A stretch of DNA of 64,000 nucleotides from Octopus sinensis (Eukaryota), in the NCBI RefSeq assembly GCF_006345805.1, contig NC_043019.1, forward strand, positions 14,879,360 through 14,943,359, given 5' to 3'. Below the pieces are notes generated by a model. The model saw only the letters and a list, made by a program, of their open reading frames with translations. It did not search any database and had not been told where the DNA came from. This document shows positions 28,446 through 42,931 of this stretch, one piece after another. Numbering within the stretch: the first letter of the stretch is position 1; each line of letters starts with the position of its first letter. Position numbers and translations under genes: made by a program.

Positions 28446-31339
28446 CAGAGACTGTGTGAGATATCGTATCTGCAAAGAGACAAAAAAAATATATTAATAT
28501 ATTAATTAAAATATAATTTTAATAAAACTTTCGTTTAATTACAACAAAATTATTACAACAATTATTATTATTATTATTATTATTATTTTTTATGCCCCGG
28601 GCAAAAGGCTTACGAGTTCAAATTCCGCCGTGGTTGACTTTGCCTTTCATCCTTTCGGGGTCGATTAAATAAGTACCTGTTACGCACTGGGGTCGATATA
28701 ATCGACTTAATCCGTTTGTCTGTCTTCTCTCTGTTTAACCCCTTGTGGGTAGTAAAGAAATAGGTATTTCGTCAGCTGCTACGTTCTGAGCTTTACGTCC
28801 GCGGGATCGACTTGCCATTCATCTTCACGGAGTTGATAAACTGAAAGAAGCTCGTCGTGTGCGTATGTATGTGTATATATATATATATATATATATGTGT
28901 GTGTATGTGTTAGTGTGTGTCTGTCTCTGTCACCCCCACCCAACCTCGCTTGACAACCGATGCTGGTGTGTTTACATCCTCGTAACTTAGCGGTTCGGCA
29001 AAAGAGACCGATAGAATAAGTATTAGGCTTACAAAGAATAAATCCTGGGGTCGATTTCCTCGACTAAAGGCGGTGCTCCATCATAGCCGCAGCCAAATGA
29101 CTGAAAAGAATAAAAGATATATATATATATATATATATATATATATGATGGGCCTCTTTCAGTTTCCTTCAATCAAATCCACTCACAAGGCGTGTGTGTT
29201 GGCGCTGTGAACGACATTAGAAAGCACATGTTGATCTTAAATATATAACAAAGAAAAGTCCATAGTATGTTGTTGTTGTTATTATTATTATTATTATTCA
29301 GAAATGTGTTATTGCATATTTGGAGGAGGAGGAGTAAAAGGAAAGTGGGAGAAAAAAAAATATATATAAAAGGAATTCAACTAGTTTCACATTAAATAAT
29401 GATGATGATAATACTTTGAACATACTTGATCTGACTAGAGAACACAGTAACATACACACAATACAAATATATATATATATATAATATATATATATATATT
29501 CATTTAGTTATTTGTGGCTGGTGACGGCAAGAGCCACCGCGGTTGCTTGAGGTAAAAAGAAAATAAAAAAGATTCCATATTGTTGTTTATGTGGAATTTT
29601 TGAGGTCTTTTCTTCACATCGGCATAAAATCGTGGAAGAAGCGATAACCTGTTGAGGTGTTGTGAATCCGTTCACATGAACTAAGACTGCAATATGTTCA
29701 AGCACGACCGGATACACACACACACACACATCATTCATATATATATTATATATATATATATATATATATATTCCCGTTGCAGCCATTTAACTGCGGCTAC
29801 GCTGGATCGCCACCTTAAGGGGTTTTAGTCGAACAAATCGTTCCCAGAACATATTGTTTTTAAGCCCGTAGTATGTGTGTGTGTGTGTGTGTGTGTGTGT
29901 ATATATATATAATATATATATATATATATATATATATAGATATATATATATATAATGTTTGTGTTTGTCTCCCCACCATCGCTTCACAACCAATGTTGGT
30001 GTGTTTATGTCATCGTCATTTAGCGGTTCGGCAAAAGAGACCAATAGAATAAATACTAGGCTTACAAAGAATAAGTCCTAGGGTCGAATTGTTCGATTAA
30101 AGGCGGTGCTCCAACATGGCCGCAGTCAAATGACTGAAGCAAGTAAAAGAATGTATACACACACTTATAATACATCACATGCATATCTTTTACCGTTTAC
30201 TTGTTTCAGTCATTGGACTGCAGCCATGCTGGAGCACCGCTTTGAACAGTGTAAGTAAAAGAAATCGAACCCACTCGTCACTTTTGAAGCCTGGTACTTA
30301 TCACAGCTTCCGTCTACAAAATTCACCCACAAAGCATTGATCAGCCCGGAGCTATGTAGTAGAAGACACCTGTTCAACGTGCCTCGCGGTCGGACTGAAC
30401 CCAAATCCACGAGGTTGCACAGCCATGACTGTGCCTGCCTGCTCACTATATATACTTTTCAAAGTGACATATATATATATATACATATATATATGGTACC
30501 TTGGGCAAGTGTCTTCTATTATAACCTCGGGCCAACTAACGCCTTGTGAGTGGATTTGGTAGACGGAAACTGAAAGAAGCTCGTCGTGTGTATATATATA
30601 TATATATATATATATATATATATATTATATATATATATAGATATACATGTATATATGGGTACAGAACGTCACCAACAGTAACAATATGAAATACGAAAAC
30701 AAATGAGTTCAATGCGCAAACAACGAGAGAAACAAATGGAAAACAAGACAAGTAACACAAAGAACGACCCTTCATCAGTTGTCGGCTGTCTATCTACTCA
30801 TTTCGATCATTGAATAAAATTTGGGATTTATAGAGGGTCAAAGTTGGGAATAAAAACAGGACTGTGGAGACATACAACCTATCATATACATATCGTTTGT
30901 GTGTCCTTGTGTCTATGTTTGTCCCCCTCCCCCATCACTTTTTGACAACCGGTGTTGGTGTGTTTACATCCCCGTAACATAGCGGTTCAGCAAAAGACAC
31001 CGATAGAATAAGTAGTAGGTTTAAAAAGTAAGCCTTGAGGTCGATTTGTTCGACTAAAACTCTTCAAGGCGGTGCTCAAGCATGGCCGTAGTCTAATGGC
31101 TGAGGCAAGTACAAGAATAAAAGAATATATCCTAAACCGGAATTATACATTTGTATTAAACCCAATGAAACGAATTTCATGGATTTTACGTATCAGTGAA
31201 GTCCTGTTTAATTATTTATCTTAACCAATTGGAGTGACTGTGTGGTAATTAGCTTGCTTACCAACCATATGGTTCTGGGTTCCCAGTGTTCTAAATGATA
31301 ACGAAACTGGAAAAGACATTACATAATGCTATCCTAGAT

Positions 31340-31586
31340 CAGCGGTTCTCAAGCGGGGTCCAGACCACCTTGCGGGGTTCATATCACCTTTGGAGGTCCG
31401 TATAAGATTTTGTTGTTAAAGTTTAAGGGCAATAAATTTATCATTGTACTTTTATACAATTCCTAATTTATACTCAATTATAAAAATATAAAGGGGTTTC
31501 TTAAACATCGAATGGCTGTGTAAGTCCACCCAAGTAAAATTAGTATCAAAGGGATCCATAGGTAAAAAATGGTGTGAGAAACATTG
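31340..31586. mobile_element. hAT-type MITE
   Basis: Termini cagcggttctca...tgagaaacattg. Internal similarity, in inverted orientation, to 39817-40076. Confidence 0.65.
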
Positions 31587-33796
31587 TTTTAGGGCCTGAT
31601 TTAATAGTTGTGTCTGTGTGAAAATTGGTTCAAAGTCTTCTCAATCAGGACTGACCTAGGGCTAAATAGCAACGCCATCTACCGATCGAGGACCTCGGAA
31701 TGATTAAATGCCACAGCCCAATGGGAATTGAACACAAGAATGTGAAATGGCGTAACGTTACGAGGCACTTTATTCGGCGCTCTACCGAACCTCATTTAAA
31801 ATTCACATCAACTGAGACGACGAGAATCTCATTAAACAATTTTCAATGAAAGTTTTATTTCTGTTCTTTAAGCCATGAAGATCTTTTATTCATCAGGACT
31901 GACCAAGAAACCTATTTCAGCTGACCGGTTTCTTCGCCTTATTTTGCTTTGAGGACGACAACGAAGACGCGTGTGTGTGTGTGTGTGTGACGGAAAGAAA
32001 AGAACATCGAAAATAGAAAACGTTTTTTGTTTTGTTGTTGTTGTAGAACCATAAATATTTCAAGGACGGTGTGAGAGGCGGTGGTTGAAATTGTGGGTTA
32101 GTGGGGCGTATGACGAGTGAATAGCGAATACCTTACGTCTCACGTTGTGCCAACCCGTCTGCGTGCATGTCTGAGCGAGTGTGTTCCAAGCCCGCCAGGG
32201 GTGTGTGCGCGCGCGTGCCTGTTCGTCTGTGTCTGTGTGTCCCCGCCTGTTCGCCTGCGTGTTCAGTCTGCTCGTCACCTGCCCGTGTATTCCTGTCTGC
32301 ATATGCCTGTCTGCCTTTCCTCCCGTGTCTCTCCACCCAACTCGCTTGTGCGTAACCTGTCCCCCCCCCCGTTGTTTATGCGCCTCCAGCTTGTAGGTAG
32401 CTTCCCCCAACACACCACCGCTTGTATATACCTGTCTACCTGTTAATCGTTAATGCAGGCCCGTCTGCCTAAGCTCGTCTACCTGCCTATGCATGCCAGC
32501 CTGTTCACCCCACACCCCTGTGTGTCTCCACCTTTTCTCACCCTCAATACCTGTCCGCATATTTTCAGGTGCAAACTCGCCGAGGACAGCTCTCCTTTCT
32601 AAAATACCAGTTTAATACTGGGCAGTCATTTCAGAAGATTACATTACACATTTTTGTAACTTCTGGTTTTGCTACTAGGAATTTACGAAATTTTAGTTTT
32701 ACAAATCTCCTTAACGAGTTCAAATCCCAAAACGGTACTCTTTTAATTTTCATCCTCAACCCAACATTATACTGCTTAATCGTGTCGCTCGTCCTGCTAT
32801 AAATAGTAGCCACATTTTCTCAAATACACTATTGCTAAAAAAAAAAAAATGATAAATGAAATGACGGTATGATCATGGCAAAAACGCCTTTTATAATAGA
32901 TCTACTTCAAAAAGGTTGACCTAGGGTTAAAGAACTACTGCTGTAGCAACTAAGGATTCAGTCATTATTATTATTTAAAGGCGGCGATCTGGCAGAAACG
33001 TTAGCACGCCGGGCGAAATGCTTAGCGGCATTTCGTCTGCCGTTACGTTCTGAGTTCAAATTCCGCCGAGGTCGACTTTGCCTTTGATCCTTTCGGGGTC
33101 GATTAAATAAGTACCAGTTACGCACCGGGGTCGATATAATCGACTTAATCCGTTTGTCTGTCCTTGTTTGTCCCCTCTGTGTTTAGCCCCTTGTGGGTAG
33201 TAAAGAAATAGGTATTTCGCCCGTCACTACGTTCTAAGTTCAAATTCCGCCGAGGTCGACTTTGCCTCTCATCCTTTCGGGGTCGATAAAGTACCAGTGA
33301 AATACTGGGGTCGATATAATTGCCTAGTCCCCACCTCACAAATATGAGGCCTTGTTGCTCCAGTAGAAGGGATTGTTATTATTAAGGCGGTGAGCTGGCA
33401 AAGATCCTTAAAACGCTGGACGAAATGCTTAGCAGCATTTCGTCCGTCACTGCGTTCTGAGGTCAAATTCCGCCGAGGTCGGCTTTGCCATTCATTCTTT
33501 CGGGGGTCGATGAATTAAGTACCAGTGAAACACTGGGGTCGATGTGATTGCCCAGTCCCCTCCCAGGAGATTTCAGGCCCTGTGCCTTCAGTAGAAAGGA
33601 TTACTAATATTATTAGTAGTAGTAATATGGTGCCGCCACCACTTGTGCCGCTGCCATCCCCCCCCTCCACACCACGACCACCAAAATCATGACAACTACC
33701 AGCAGCAGCAGCAGCGCCGCCGCCGCCGCCGCAATTCCATTCCGCTAGAGTATTAAGTAACATTTAGCAAAATTGCATGGAAGTGAAGTGAAGCGA

Positions 33797-41949: not shown

Positions 41950-42860
41950 AATAGAGAGAGAGAGAGAGGATGAGAGAGAGAGAGGATGAGAGAAGATAAG
42001 AGAGAGAGAGAGAGAGGATGAGAGAGAAGAGAGAGAGAGAGGAGAGAGGGATGAGAGAGAGAGAGGGATGAGAGAGAGAGAGGATGAGAGAGAAAGAGAG
42101 GAGAGAGAGAGAGATGAGAGAGAGAGAGGATGAGAGAGAGAGAGGATGAGAGAGAGAGGGATGAGAGAGAAGAGAGAGAGAGAGAGGATGAGAGAGAGAG
42201 AGAGAGGAGAGGAGGAGAGAGAGAGAGAGGATGAGAGAGAGAGAGGATGAGAGAGAAGAGAGAGAGAGAGAGAGAGAGGATGAGAGAGAGAGAGGATGAG
42301 AGAGAAGAGAGAGATGAGAGAGAGAGGATGAGAGAGAGAGAGAGACTCACAGAACTTGACTGACATTAAAGTTATCGACATTCCCCACCTCCTGAAATTT
42401 TAAATACAAAACGGAACCCGATGGGGACTTCGAAGCAAAGAGAGAGAGAGAGATGATAAGAGAGAGGATGAGAGAGAAGATGAGAGAGAGAGAGAGAGAG
42501 GATGAGTGAGGGAGATGATGAGAGAGAGAGAGCGAGTGGATGAGATATATAGAAATGTCAGAAAGGTTGAGAGAGAGAGAGAGAGATAAGTGGGAGAGAT
42601 GAGAGGCAGAGCGATGAGAGAGAGAGAGAGGGGATGAGAGAGAGAAGATGAGAGAAAGTGGATGAGAGAGAGAAGTAGTGAGGTGATTAGAGAGGTAGAG
42701 ATGACAGAGGTAGAGCGATGAGAGAGAGAGAGAGGGGGTAGATAAGAGAAGAGAGATACAGAGAAAGGAGAGGTAGAGAGAGAGAGAGAGAGAGAAAAGA
42801 GGTAGAGAGAGAGAGAGAGAAAAGAGGTAGAGGTAGAGAGAGAGAGAGAGAGATGAATAG
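41950..42860 (+). repeat. Complex polypurine (GA)n/GAGGAT minisatellite
   Basis: About 900 bp almost entirely G/A on the plus strand, with periodic GAT interruptions. Confidence 0.95.
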
Positions 42861-42931
42861 CTGAGTCAAAATGGTGGAGGAAAGACGAGGTCGGCAAAGT
42901 GTGGGAATGAAAAGTTGTATGTGAAACTTAC

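Follow-up and report, generated by a model that had tools for sequence, protein, structure and literature searches.

A Two-Exon Gene Model for a Trunk-Like Ligand of Octopus sinensis and the His-Rich Repeat DNA Upstream of It

Introduction

In the genome of Octopus sinensis, a gene for a putative Trunk-like ligand lies downstream of a long block of His-rich, stop-poor repeat DNA. Do the two encode one protein? The stretch examined here, which we call the window, comprises 64,000 nucleotides (nt) of NC_043019.1, with all features of the gene on the minus strand. Its trunk-like coding sequence (CDS) is one open exon of 421 codons when counted from the methionine of MFRV (28445-27180). An initial annotation of this DNA proposed that a perfect splice donor at 42931 is joined in phase, across 14.46 kb, to the acceptor of this exon, and that the resulting open reading frame (ORF) of 1317 or 1347 residues, starting from ATG 45689 or 46099, fuses a large disordered N-terminal region to the Trunk precursor. 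The signal peptide would then act as an internal type II anchor, and Trunk would be tethered to the membrane until released by furin. If true, this Trunk ligand would carry a large, cytosolic N-terminal domain of low complexity and would be an unprecedented tethered form of a Torso ligand.

Trunk is present in molluscs (PMC6660194, PMC6425005, PMC8398477), and Torso orthologues have been reported in lophotrochozoans (PMC6660194). The precursors of Trunk and PTTH consist of a signal peptide, a pro-region, a cleavage site, and a cystine knot (PMC8398477). In this report we show that the annotation of the sister species Octopus bimaculoides already contains the proposed junction. The arrangement is an ordinary one, in which the first coding exon contributes nine residues. 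Fusion of the His-rich block to Trunk is unlikely.

Results

The closest relative of the octopus protein is a protein from O. bimaculoides (96% identity), followed by oyster proteins named "protein trunk-like" that match the C-terminal fifth. Clustered with the O. bimaculoides protein at 90% identity is a second member, the RefSeq entry XP_052831940.1 (443 residues, LOC106874022, "uncharacterized protein"). The N-terminus of this entry reads MSRSWPLTQMRYLTQSLMFRV, that is MSRSWPLTQ/MRYLTQSLMFRV, with the junction MSRSWPLTQ/MRYLTQSL (here and below, a slash marks an exon boundary or a cleavage position). These first nine residues correspond to the codons that precede the donor in the window, and they are joined to the same acceptor exon. 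We could rebuild XP_052831940.1 exactly from its genomic locus (L004, CM046623.1), with exon 1 at 10001-10027 (ATGTCACGAAGTTGGCCTTTGACACAG/GTAAGG), an intron of 25,120 nt that includes ~7.8 kb of N gaps, and exon 2 at 35148-36452, behind ..ttgtctccttgcag/ (CAG). Colinearity between L004 and the window extends from 52.8 kb to 17.6 kb. Both species retain the donor, the acceptor, and the nine codons, which show synonymous changes only. The initial annotation had pointed to other cephalopods as a place to look for this exon linkage, and LOC106874022 has it. Joining 42958-42932 to 28469-27180 in O. sinensis affords a precursor of 438 residues that is 97% identical to XP_052831940.1. We consider it very likely that the gene in the window is the orthologue of LOC106874022 and specifies a Trunk/PTTH-type cystine-knot ligand in two coding exons, the first of which is only nine residues long.

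In the window, the donor ..TTGACTCAG/GTAAGT (in longer context ..TCGCGAAGTTGGCCTTTGACTCAG/GTAAGT) has its last exon base at 42932 and the G of its GT at 42931, and the frame ..SRSWPLTQ ends in phase 0. The acceptor tttttttttgtctctttgcag/ATACGATAT (longer exon side: ATACGATATCTCACACAGTCTCTGATGTTC) has its AG end at 28470. The exon that starts at 28469, also in phase 0, reads IRYLTQSL and then MFRV.. without a stop. The span 28470-42931 is exactly this intron, 14,462 nt, and is very probably the true first intron of the gene. On donor, acceptor, phase, and the stop-free passage into MFRV, the initial annotation was correct. Its statement that the 14.46 kb in between hold no convincing coding exon is consistent with our data: interspersed repeats that recur elsewhere in the window make up at least 40% of the interval, and the RefSeq orthologue in O. 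bimaculoides has no exon there. Alternative first exons within the intron (donors 37796, 40309, and 41029, the next-best inside it) were discarded, as these donors score lower and lie outside the blocks that can be aligned to O. bimaculoides.

From the window alone, the pairing of this donor with this acceptor is not compelling. The motif CAGGTAAGT is the sole perfect donor 9-mer in the window and the top-scoring donor on the minus strand (scored with an approximate textbook donor matrix). Its occurrence is within chance: 0.64 copies are expected, and 50 of 100 shuffled sequences contained at least one. Phase 0 together with an in-frame ATG before a stop was found for 50 of 149 moderate upstream donors. 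The join of 42932 to 28469 is carried by the junction of XP_052831940.1, by the conserved donor, acceptor, and codons, and by a phase-0 intron in the related genes of oysters and of the ENA contig L003.

The trunk-like genes of Saccostrea echinata and Crassostrea angulata have two coding exons, separated by a phase-0 intron of ~1.5 kb that lies seven codons ahead of the hydrophobic core of the signal peptide. Exon 1 of the oyster genes comprises 28 codons including the start codon, and a Met lies nine codons ahead of the junction. When the sequences are aligned without gaps, the octopus junction falls at most two codons from that of the oysters. In contig L003, a strong phase-0 acceptor is separated from the hydrophobic core by four codons, none of them Met. 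Since position and phase of this intron are conserved, the phase match noted in the initial annotation is a conserved gene feature and no coincidence. An intron that splits the signal peptide in phase 0 and is common to oysters and octopus is probably old within molluscs. Two database proteins, P0003 (..KIVFQ/VQSKY) and P0005 (..LYLQ/VLKTW; L003 10001-10040), are ORF calls that read on across the 3' intron end. Their N-termini are spurious, yet these calls mark the conserved acceptor.

The C-terminal domain of the octopus protein is 60% identical to that of the Saccostrea "protein trunk-like" (E = 3e-43), a name that stems from the source annotation rather than from a functional test. The best match in the PDB is Bombyx PTTH (5AOQ), with the cysteine framework aligned over 84 residues at an E of only 0.1. 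Seven cysteines (C337, C360, C365, C372, C389, C416, and C418) are invariant in six mollusc-type sequences. No Pfam family exceeded its threshold; the related cystine-knot folds IL17 and Noggin reached 16.6 bits (cut-off 24) and 12.6 bits (cut-off 24.1), and the scan gave no match from a Trunk- or PTTH-specific model. At the N-terminus, inspection and hydropathy reveal a core of 13-15 residues and, after it, a conserved A/[YF]P. The 19-residue Kyte-Doolittle mean of this segment is high (2.17), but the uncharged run is only 15 residues long, contains a Pro, and is followed by the cleavage-type motif. Judged by its sequence, this stretch has the size and shape of a cleavable signal peptide. A furin-type motif, RHKR (residues 321-324), separates the pro-region from the mature domain, whose first knot cysteine is residue 337. 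Cleavage of the signal peptide and furin processing of the 438-residue precursor are predicted from these motifs.

Upstream of exon 1, positions 43100-45600 are a mosaic of trinucleotide microsatellites and a 42-nt minisatellite. Three long open stretches follow one another, each overlapping the next at its end: ORF C (above 46300 down to 45686), ORF A (45689-43710; the His-rich orphan protein of the initial annotation), and ORF B (43804-42932). The frame of ORF A contains no stop, although ~16 would be expected from its T-initial codons and the two remaining sense frames contain 18 and 41. Perfect repeat accounts for only 13% of ORF A. The same frames are open in O. bimaculoides (L004 7156-8492 and 8855-10027). 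A Markov-shuffle test of ORF length made a 690-codon open stretch look extreme, but the shuffle destroys the repeat structure, and we did not rely on this test.

To judge the upstream frames by their substitution patterns, we compared them with O. bimaculoides (Table 1), using the trunk CDS as a control (synonymous divergence, pS, 0.125) and a neutral baseline of nucleotide identity of 0.91 in alignable intron and 0.895 upstream. For ORF B and for the C-terminal part of ORF A, identity at this baseline without codon-position bias indicates neutral divergence. ORF C is conserved, yet equally across codon positions. In the N-terminal part of ORF A, the low ratio of nonsynonymous to synonymous divergence (dN/dS) reflects CAT/CAC turnover in His runs. 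When these codons are left out, 17 synonymous and 31 nonsynonymous differences remain, which is near neutral. Over 45689-45080, dN/dS is 0.42. The block 45080-46130 is more conserved than either the synonymous sites of the trunk CDS or the alignable intron, with its differences even over codon positions, and may be a conserved regulatory element or leader.

Table 1. Substitution patterns relative to O. bimaculoides
Region	Identity	dN/dS	Differences at codon positions 1 / 2 / 3
Trunk CDS (control)	0.963	0.10	6 / 6 / 34
ORF B, 43745-43300	0.919	0.60	8 / 12 / 10
ORF B, 43300-42959	0.900	1.01	11 / 9 / 12
ORF A, C-terminal part	0.898	0.87	10 / 12 / 16
ORF C	0.960	0.89	6 / 4 / 6
ORF A, N-terminal part	0.93-0.97	0.25	12 / 17 / 34

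The two species differ by 11 nt in the length of a (CAY)n run near the end of ORF A. This difference shifts the frame, ends ORF A at 43710, and splits it from ORF B in the window. In O. bimaculoides, by contrast, ORF B continues the frame of the C-terminal part of ORF A, and this joint frame is open for 391 codons, from the edge of an assembly gap (362 N, CM046623.1, ~6,794,406-6,794,767) to the donor. Either a true indel or a mistake in one of the two genome assemblies could explain the length difference.

Two homology searches over billions of proteins were run with the upstream ORFs. Among the best 8000 candidates, neither the whole of ORF A (659 residues; E ≤ 0.01) nor a composite of all non-repetitive upstream pieces (E ≤ 0.1) had a homologue. 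An exhaustive HMMER search returned five marginal matches only (2e-5 to 6e-4), and the two that we inspected (P0008 and P0011) are unrelated tandem-repeat proteins. Pfam gave nothing meaningful on the upstream ORFs, and Rfam no match over 27000-47500. An exact-protein look-up of the 421-residue Trunk ORF of the window, the 434-residue O. bimaculoides UniProt model, and the 659-residue ORF found none on record. In O. bimaculoides, RefSeq calls no gene over the orthologous His-rich block. The minus strand contains no AATAAA or ATTAAA from 46500 to 41884, and the profile of observed over expected CpG was uninformative as to the location of a promoter. The His-rich, stop-poor block 42959-46300 is outside the Trunk CDS and is a trinucleotide-repeat-rich 5' flank or leader; ORF B is most likely 5' untranslated region (UTR) or promoter-proximal low-complexity DNA, not coding sequence.

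The coordinates of all features are collected in Table 2. Further repeats lie in and around intron 1. A degenerate (CT)n/(AG)n microsatellite of ~1 kb (41935-42897) begins ~35 nt past the donor, and a similar tract occupies 60715-61317; both yield long spurious Ser/Leu ORFs. An interspersed repeat of ~250-300 nt that resembles a short interspersed nuclear element is present in many copies on both strands (75-87% identity; for example at 28838-29147, 29893-30157, 7195-7506, 16690-16951, 22973-23388, 34026-34252, and 36577-36845). A second family of ~100-240 nt is found at 28614-28840, 33052-33290, 52156-52395, and elsewhere; together, the two families occupy at least 40% of the intron. Two decayed fragments of mariner-type transposases (Pfam PF01359) are located at 5679-6074 (minus strand, E = 1e-21) and 20120-20726 (plus strand, E = 1e-16), the latter frameshifted.

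Table 2. Features of the trunk-like gene and its upstream region
Feature	Position	Strand	Evidence or remark
Exon 1, coding part: ATG TCG CGA AGT TGG CCT TTG ACT CAG = MSRSWPLTQ	42932..42958	minus	same amino acids as first nine of XP_052831940.1; two nucleotide differences, both synonymous
Donor splice site CAG/GTAAGT, phase 0	42926..42934	minus	orthologous site in O. bimaculoides CAG/GTAAGG
Intron 1, 14,462 nt, repeat-rich	28470..42931	minus	orthologous intron in O. bimaculoides 25,120 nt, ~7.8 kb of that assembly gaps
Acceptor, polypyrimidine tract and CAG, phase 0	28470..28490	minus	conserved in O. bimaculoides; phase-0 acceptor at equivalent place in two oysters and ENA contig L003
Exon 2, CDS including stop: IRYLTQSL, MFRV.. 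to ..RRSRPR and stop	27180..28469	minus	96-97% identity to O. bimaculoides proteins; dN/dS 0.10
Hydrophobic core of the predicted signal peptide, VILCLILIPTILA, then A/YP	28398..28436	minus	uncharged run 15 residues; aligns with oyster ..CANA/FP and ..CVSA/FP
Furin-type site RHKR, residues 321-324, 12 residues before first knot cysteine	27525..27536	minus	motif; literature on Trunk/PTTH precursors (PMC8398477)
C-terminal cystine-knot domain, C337 to C418, Trunk/PTTH-like mature part	27243..27488	minus	oyster "protein trunk-like", E = 3e-43; Bombyx PTTH 5AOQ, E = 0.1
Candidate polyadenylation signal ATTAAA	27130..27135	minus	45 nt past stop codon
ORF A, 659-codon His/Thr/Asn-rich stop-free frame	43710..45689	minus	own stop at 43710; frame differs from that of the donor
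ORF B, 282-codon stop-free frame in donor phase, no ATG	42959..43804	minus	dN/dS 0.6-1.0, no codon-position bias; identity 0.90-0.92, equal to intron baseline
Conserved block, ~1.05 kb, 96-97% identical to O. bimaculoides, no codon signature	45080..46130	minus	no Rfam match
11-nt length difference from O. bimaculoides within a (CAY)n run	43750..43760 (about)	minus	L004 ~9230-9270
Implied 94-nt intron, needed for 1317 residues	43805..43898	minus	donor TTT/GTAAGA, score 2.5 vs 12.7 for the main donor; one of 157 GT..AG open-frame solutions
Implied 320-nt intron, needed with the 94-nt intron for 1347 residues	45720..46039	minus	donor CCC/GTATGT, score 4.0; one of 129 solutions; no support

Discussion

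How much room do these data leave for a protein that extends beyond exon 1? The model of the initial annotation implies a long transcript that starts upstream of 45689 or 46099, loses two mini-introns together with the 14.46-kb intron, and is translated into a His-rich protein of 1317-1347 residues with an internal signal anchor and a furin-releasable Trunk. The two ORFs can indeed be rebuilt, and the arithmetic works out, but only with introns that the initial annotation did not mention. Because ORF A has its own stop and a frame that differs from that of the donor, the shorter product needs the 94-nt intron, and the longer one the 320-nt intron as well; both have weak donors and were drawn from many equivalent solutions. 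The model can point to the 659-codon frame, stop-free in both species, to the O. bimaculoides frame that runs from the C-terminal part of ORF A in phase and uninterrupted into the donor for at least 391 codons, and to the lack of AATAAA or ATTAAA from 46500 to 41884, which leaves a His-rich transcript without an obvious earlier end. We nevertheless hold it to be extremely unlikely. The His-rich ORF of the window does not share the donor frame and ends at 43710, a break tied to the 11-nt difference from O. bimaculoides. The GT of the weak 94-nt donor (43898) is GC in O. bimaculoides, where no intron is needed, and removal of this intron would read 43804-43760 in a frame other than that of the O. 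bimaculoides ORF; the 94-nt intron is probably not real. In place of one continuous upstream frame with conserved extra splice sites under purifying selection, we found a stop, a GC for a GT, and dN/dS values of 0.6-1.0 with no third-position excess in ORF B, the C-terminal part of ORF A, and ORF C, the first two at the neutral rate. The sequence that would link a disordered N-terminal region to ATG 42958 evolves neutrally, the upstream ORFs had no homologue in the protein searches, and RefSeq has no gene over the orthologue of the His-rich ORF and no longer isoform of the trunk-like gene, whose longest product has 443 residues (only the longest per gene is on record). The type II anchor, too, seems doubtful: an uncharged core of 15 residues with a Pro and a conserved A/[YF]P suggests that an internal signal would probably be cut rather than hold the protein in the membrane. 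From a chain whose internal signal carries a cleavage motif, signal peptidase would be expected to free ordinary pro-Trunk, leaving no tether. In O. bimaculoides, a His-rich-Trunk fusion of more than 1,300 residues could arise without an extra intron, provided that the 362-N gap preserves the frame, that the 11-nt frameshift of the window is an assembly error or a recent lesion, and that the transcript starts above the His-rich ATG. We regard this combination as a very long shot. In all likelihood the giant fusion is an artefact, produced by stop-poor repeat DNA that adjoins a real exon.

The His-rich frame 43710-45689 may also be read as an independent, fast-evolving, lineage-restricted gene, or as a long upstream ORF, situated just upstream of the trunk-like gene or in its leader. 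This reading is compatible with our explanation of the splice. The absence of stops from 659 codons where ~16 are expected, the open frame in both species, indels that are nearly all multiples of three, and dN/dS values of 0.25 over the whole N-terminal part and 0.42 over 45689-45080 would agree with it. Yet indels of this kind are expected from slippage of trinucleotide repeats, the low dN/dS is due to CAT/CAC turnover with a nearly neutral remainder, and the most conserved part (96-97%) is equal at all codon positions, like non-coding elements. Homologues were not found in the protein searches, RefSeq leaves the frame unannotated in O. bimaculoides, and the frame has no polyadenylation signal of its own. 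We judge an independent gene or upstream ORF to be unlikely. The more specific proposal of a separate His-rich gene that ends before trunk exon 1 was rejected on the missing polyadenylation signal and RefSeq gene, and is kept as a low-confidence rival. The remaining choice concerns the start codon: exon 1 may be real but in practice non-coding, with translation starting at the MFRV ATG (28445) and MSRSWPLTQIRYLTQSL as 5' UTR. In this case MFRV and the hydrophobic core would form a canonical short signal peptide. The older O. bimaculoides UniProt model A0A0L8ICN3 (434 residues) begins within exon 2. We give this reading a slim chance. The 291 open codons that lead up to the donor contain a single in-frame ATG, at 42958, nine codons upstream of the donor, and this ATG is the RefSeq start. 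The 45 nt ahead of it are identical in both octopus species. Over the 17 codons from this ATG to the second Met, the species differ at four positions (three synonymous changes and one I/M), all of them third positions, an outcome with a chance of 1/81 if position were indifferent. In oysters and L003, exon 2 contains no Met before the hydrophobic core, so exon 1 is necessarily coding there.

Several observations weigh against the two-exon model itself. The use of the splice sites and the choice of start codon in O. sinensis are inferred from orthology and conservation, and XP_ records are computed models. Exon 1 is defined from its coding part only (42932..42958). The window has 291 open codons in the frame that leads into the donor, and O. 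bimaculoides at least 391; the short-exon model accounts for neither. It likewise gives no explanation for the 659-codon stop-free frame that is kept in both species. Finally, an out-of-frame ATG at 42963, five nt upstream of ATG 42958, opens an overlapping upstream ORF of 8 codons, so that ATG 28445 could also serve as a start.

According to the two-exon model, exon 1 would supply the start codon (42958-42956) and the residues MSRSWPLTQ, ending at 42932. After removal of the repeat-rich phase-0 intron, exon 2 would provide the remainder of a 438-residue secreted precursor. This precursor would begin with a long signal peptide, consisting of a 20-residue n-region split by the intron and the core listed in Table 2, with probable cleavage after A33. 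An acidic/basic low-complexity pro-region, the furin-type RHKR, and the C-terminal cystine knot would follow. Such a model would fix the gene structure of a cephalopod Trunk/PTTH-family ligand for the O. sinensis genome. Its start codon would lie 14.5 kb ahead of the main exon, within 27 nt of coding sequence that single-exon predictions overlook. UniProt model A0A0L8ICN3 is one example: it starts at the exon 2 ATG, misses exon 1, and uses a start that is absent from the window. The locus also illustrates that stop-poor trinucleotide-repeat DNA beside a real exon can give a long in-phase "fusion ORF".

Comparison with Related Ligands

The gene shares with O. bimaculoides LOC106874022 97% protein identity, a colinear locus, and a division into the same two coding exons, the first again of the same nine residues. 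The intron is 25.1 kb (gaps included) in O. bimaculoides and 14.46 kb in the window, the acidic tract contains in-frame indels, and the first codon of exon 2 is ATG (Met, L004 35148-35150) in O. bimaculoides but ATA (Ile, 28467-28469) in the window. The oyster "protein trunk-like" of Saccostrea echinata (P0002) and Crassostrea angulata (P0004) resembles the octopus protein in several respects: a phase-0 intron directly ahead of the signal-peptide core, a short exon 1 that holds the start codon, a matching cleavage-type motif (A/FP), and a cystine knot that is 55-60% identical with seven invariant cysteines. In contrast, oyster exon 1 codes for 28 residues instead of 9, the oyster intron is ~1.5 kb, and the pro-region is far shorter, without long acidic and basic tracts. 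With the insect Torso ligands the similarity in sequence is marginal (E = 0.1), and Torso-type signalling in octopus is only putative. Insect Trunk and PTTH (Bombyx PTTH, PDB 5AOQ) follow the same precursor logic, including a dibasic cleavage site ahead of the C-terminal knot (PMC8398477), with a cysteine framework that aligns to that of the octopus protein over 84 residues.

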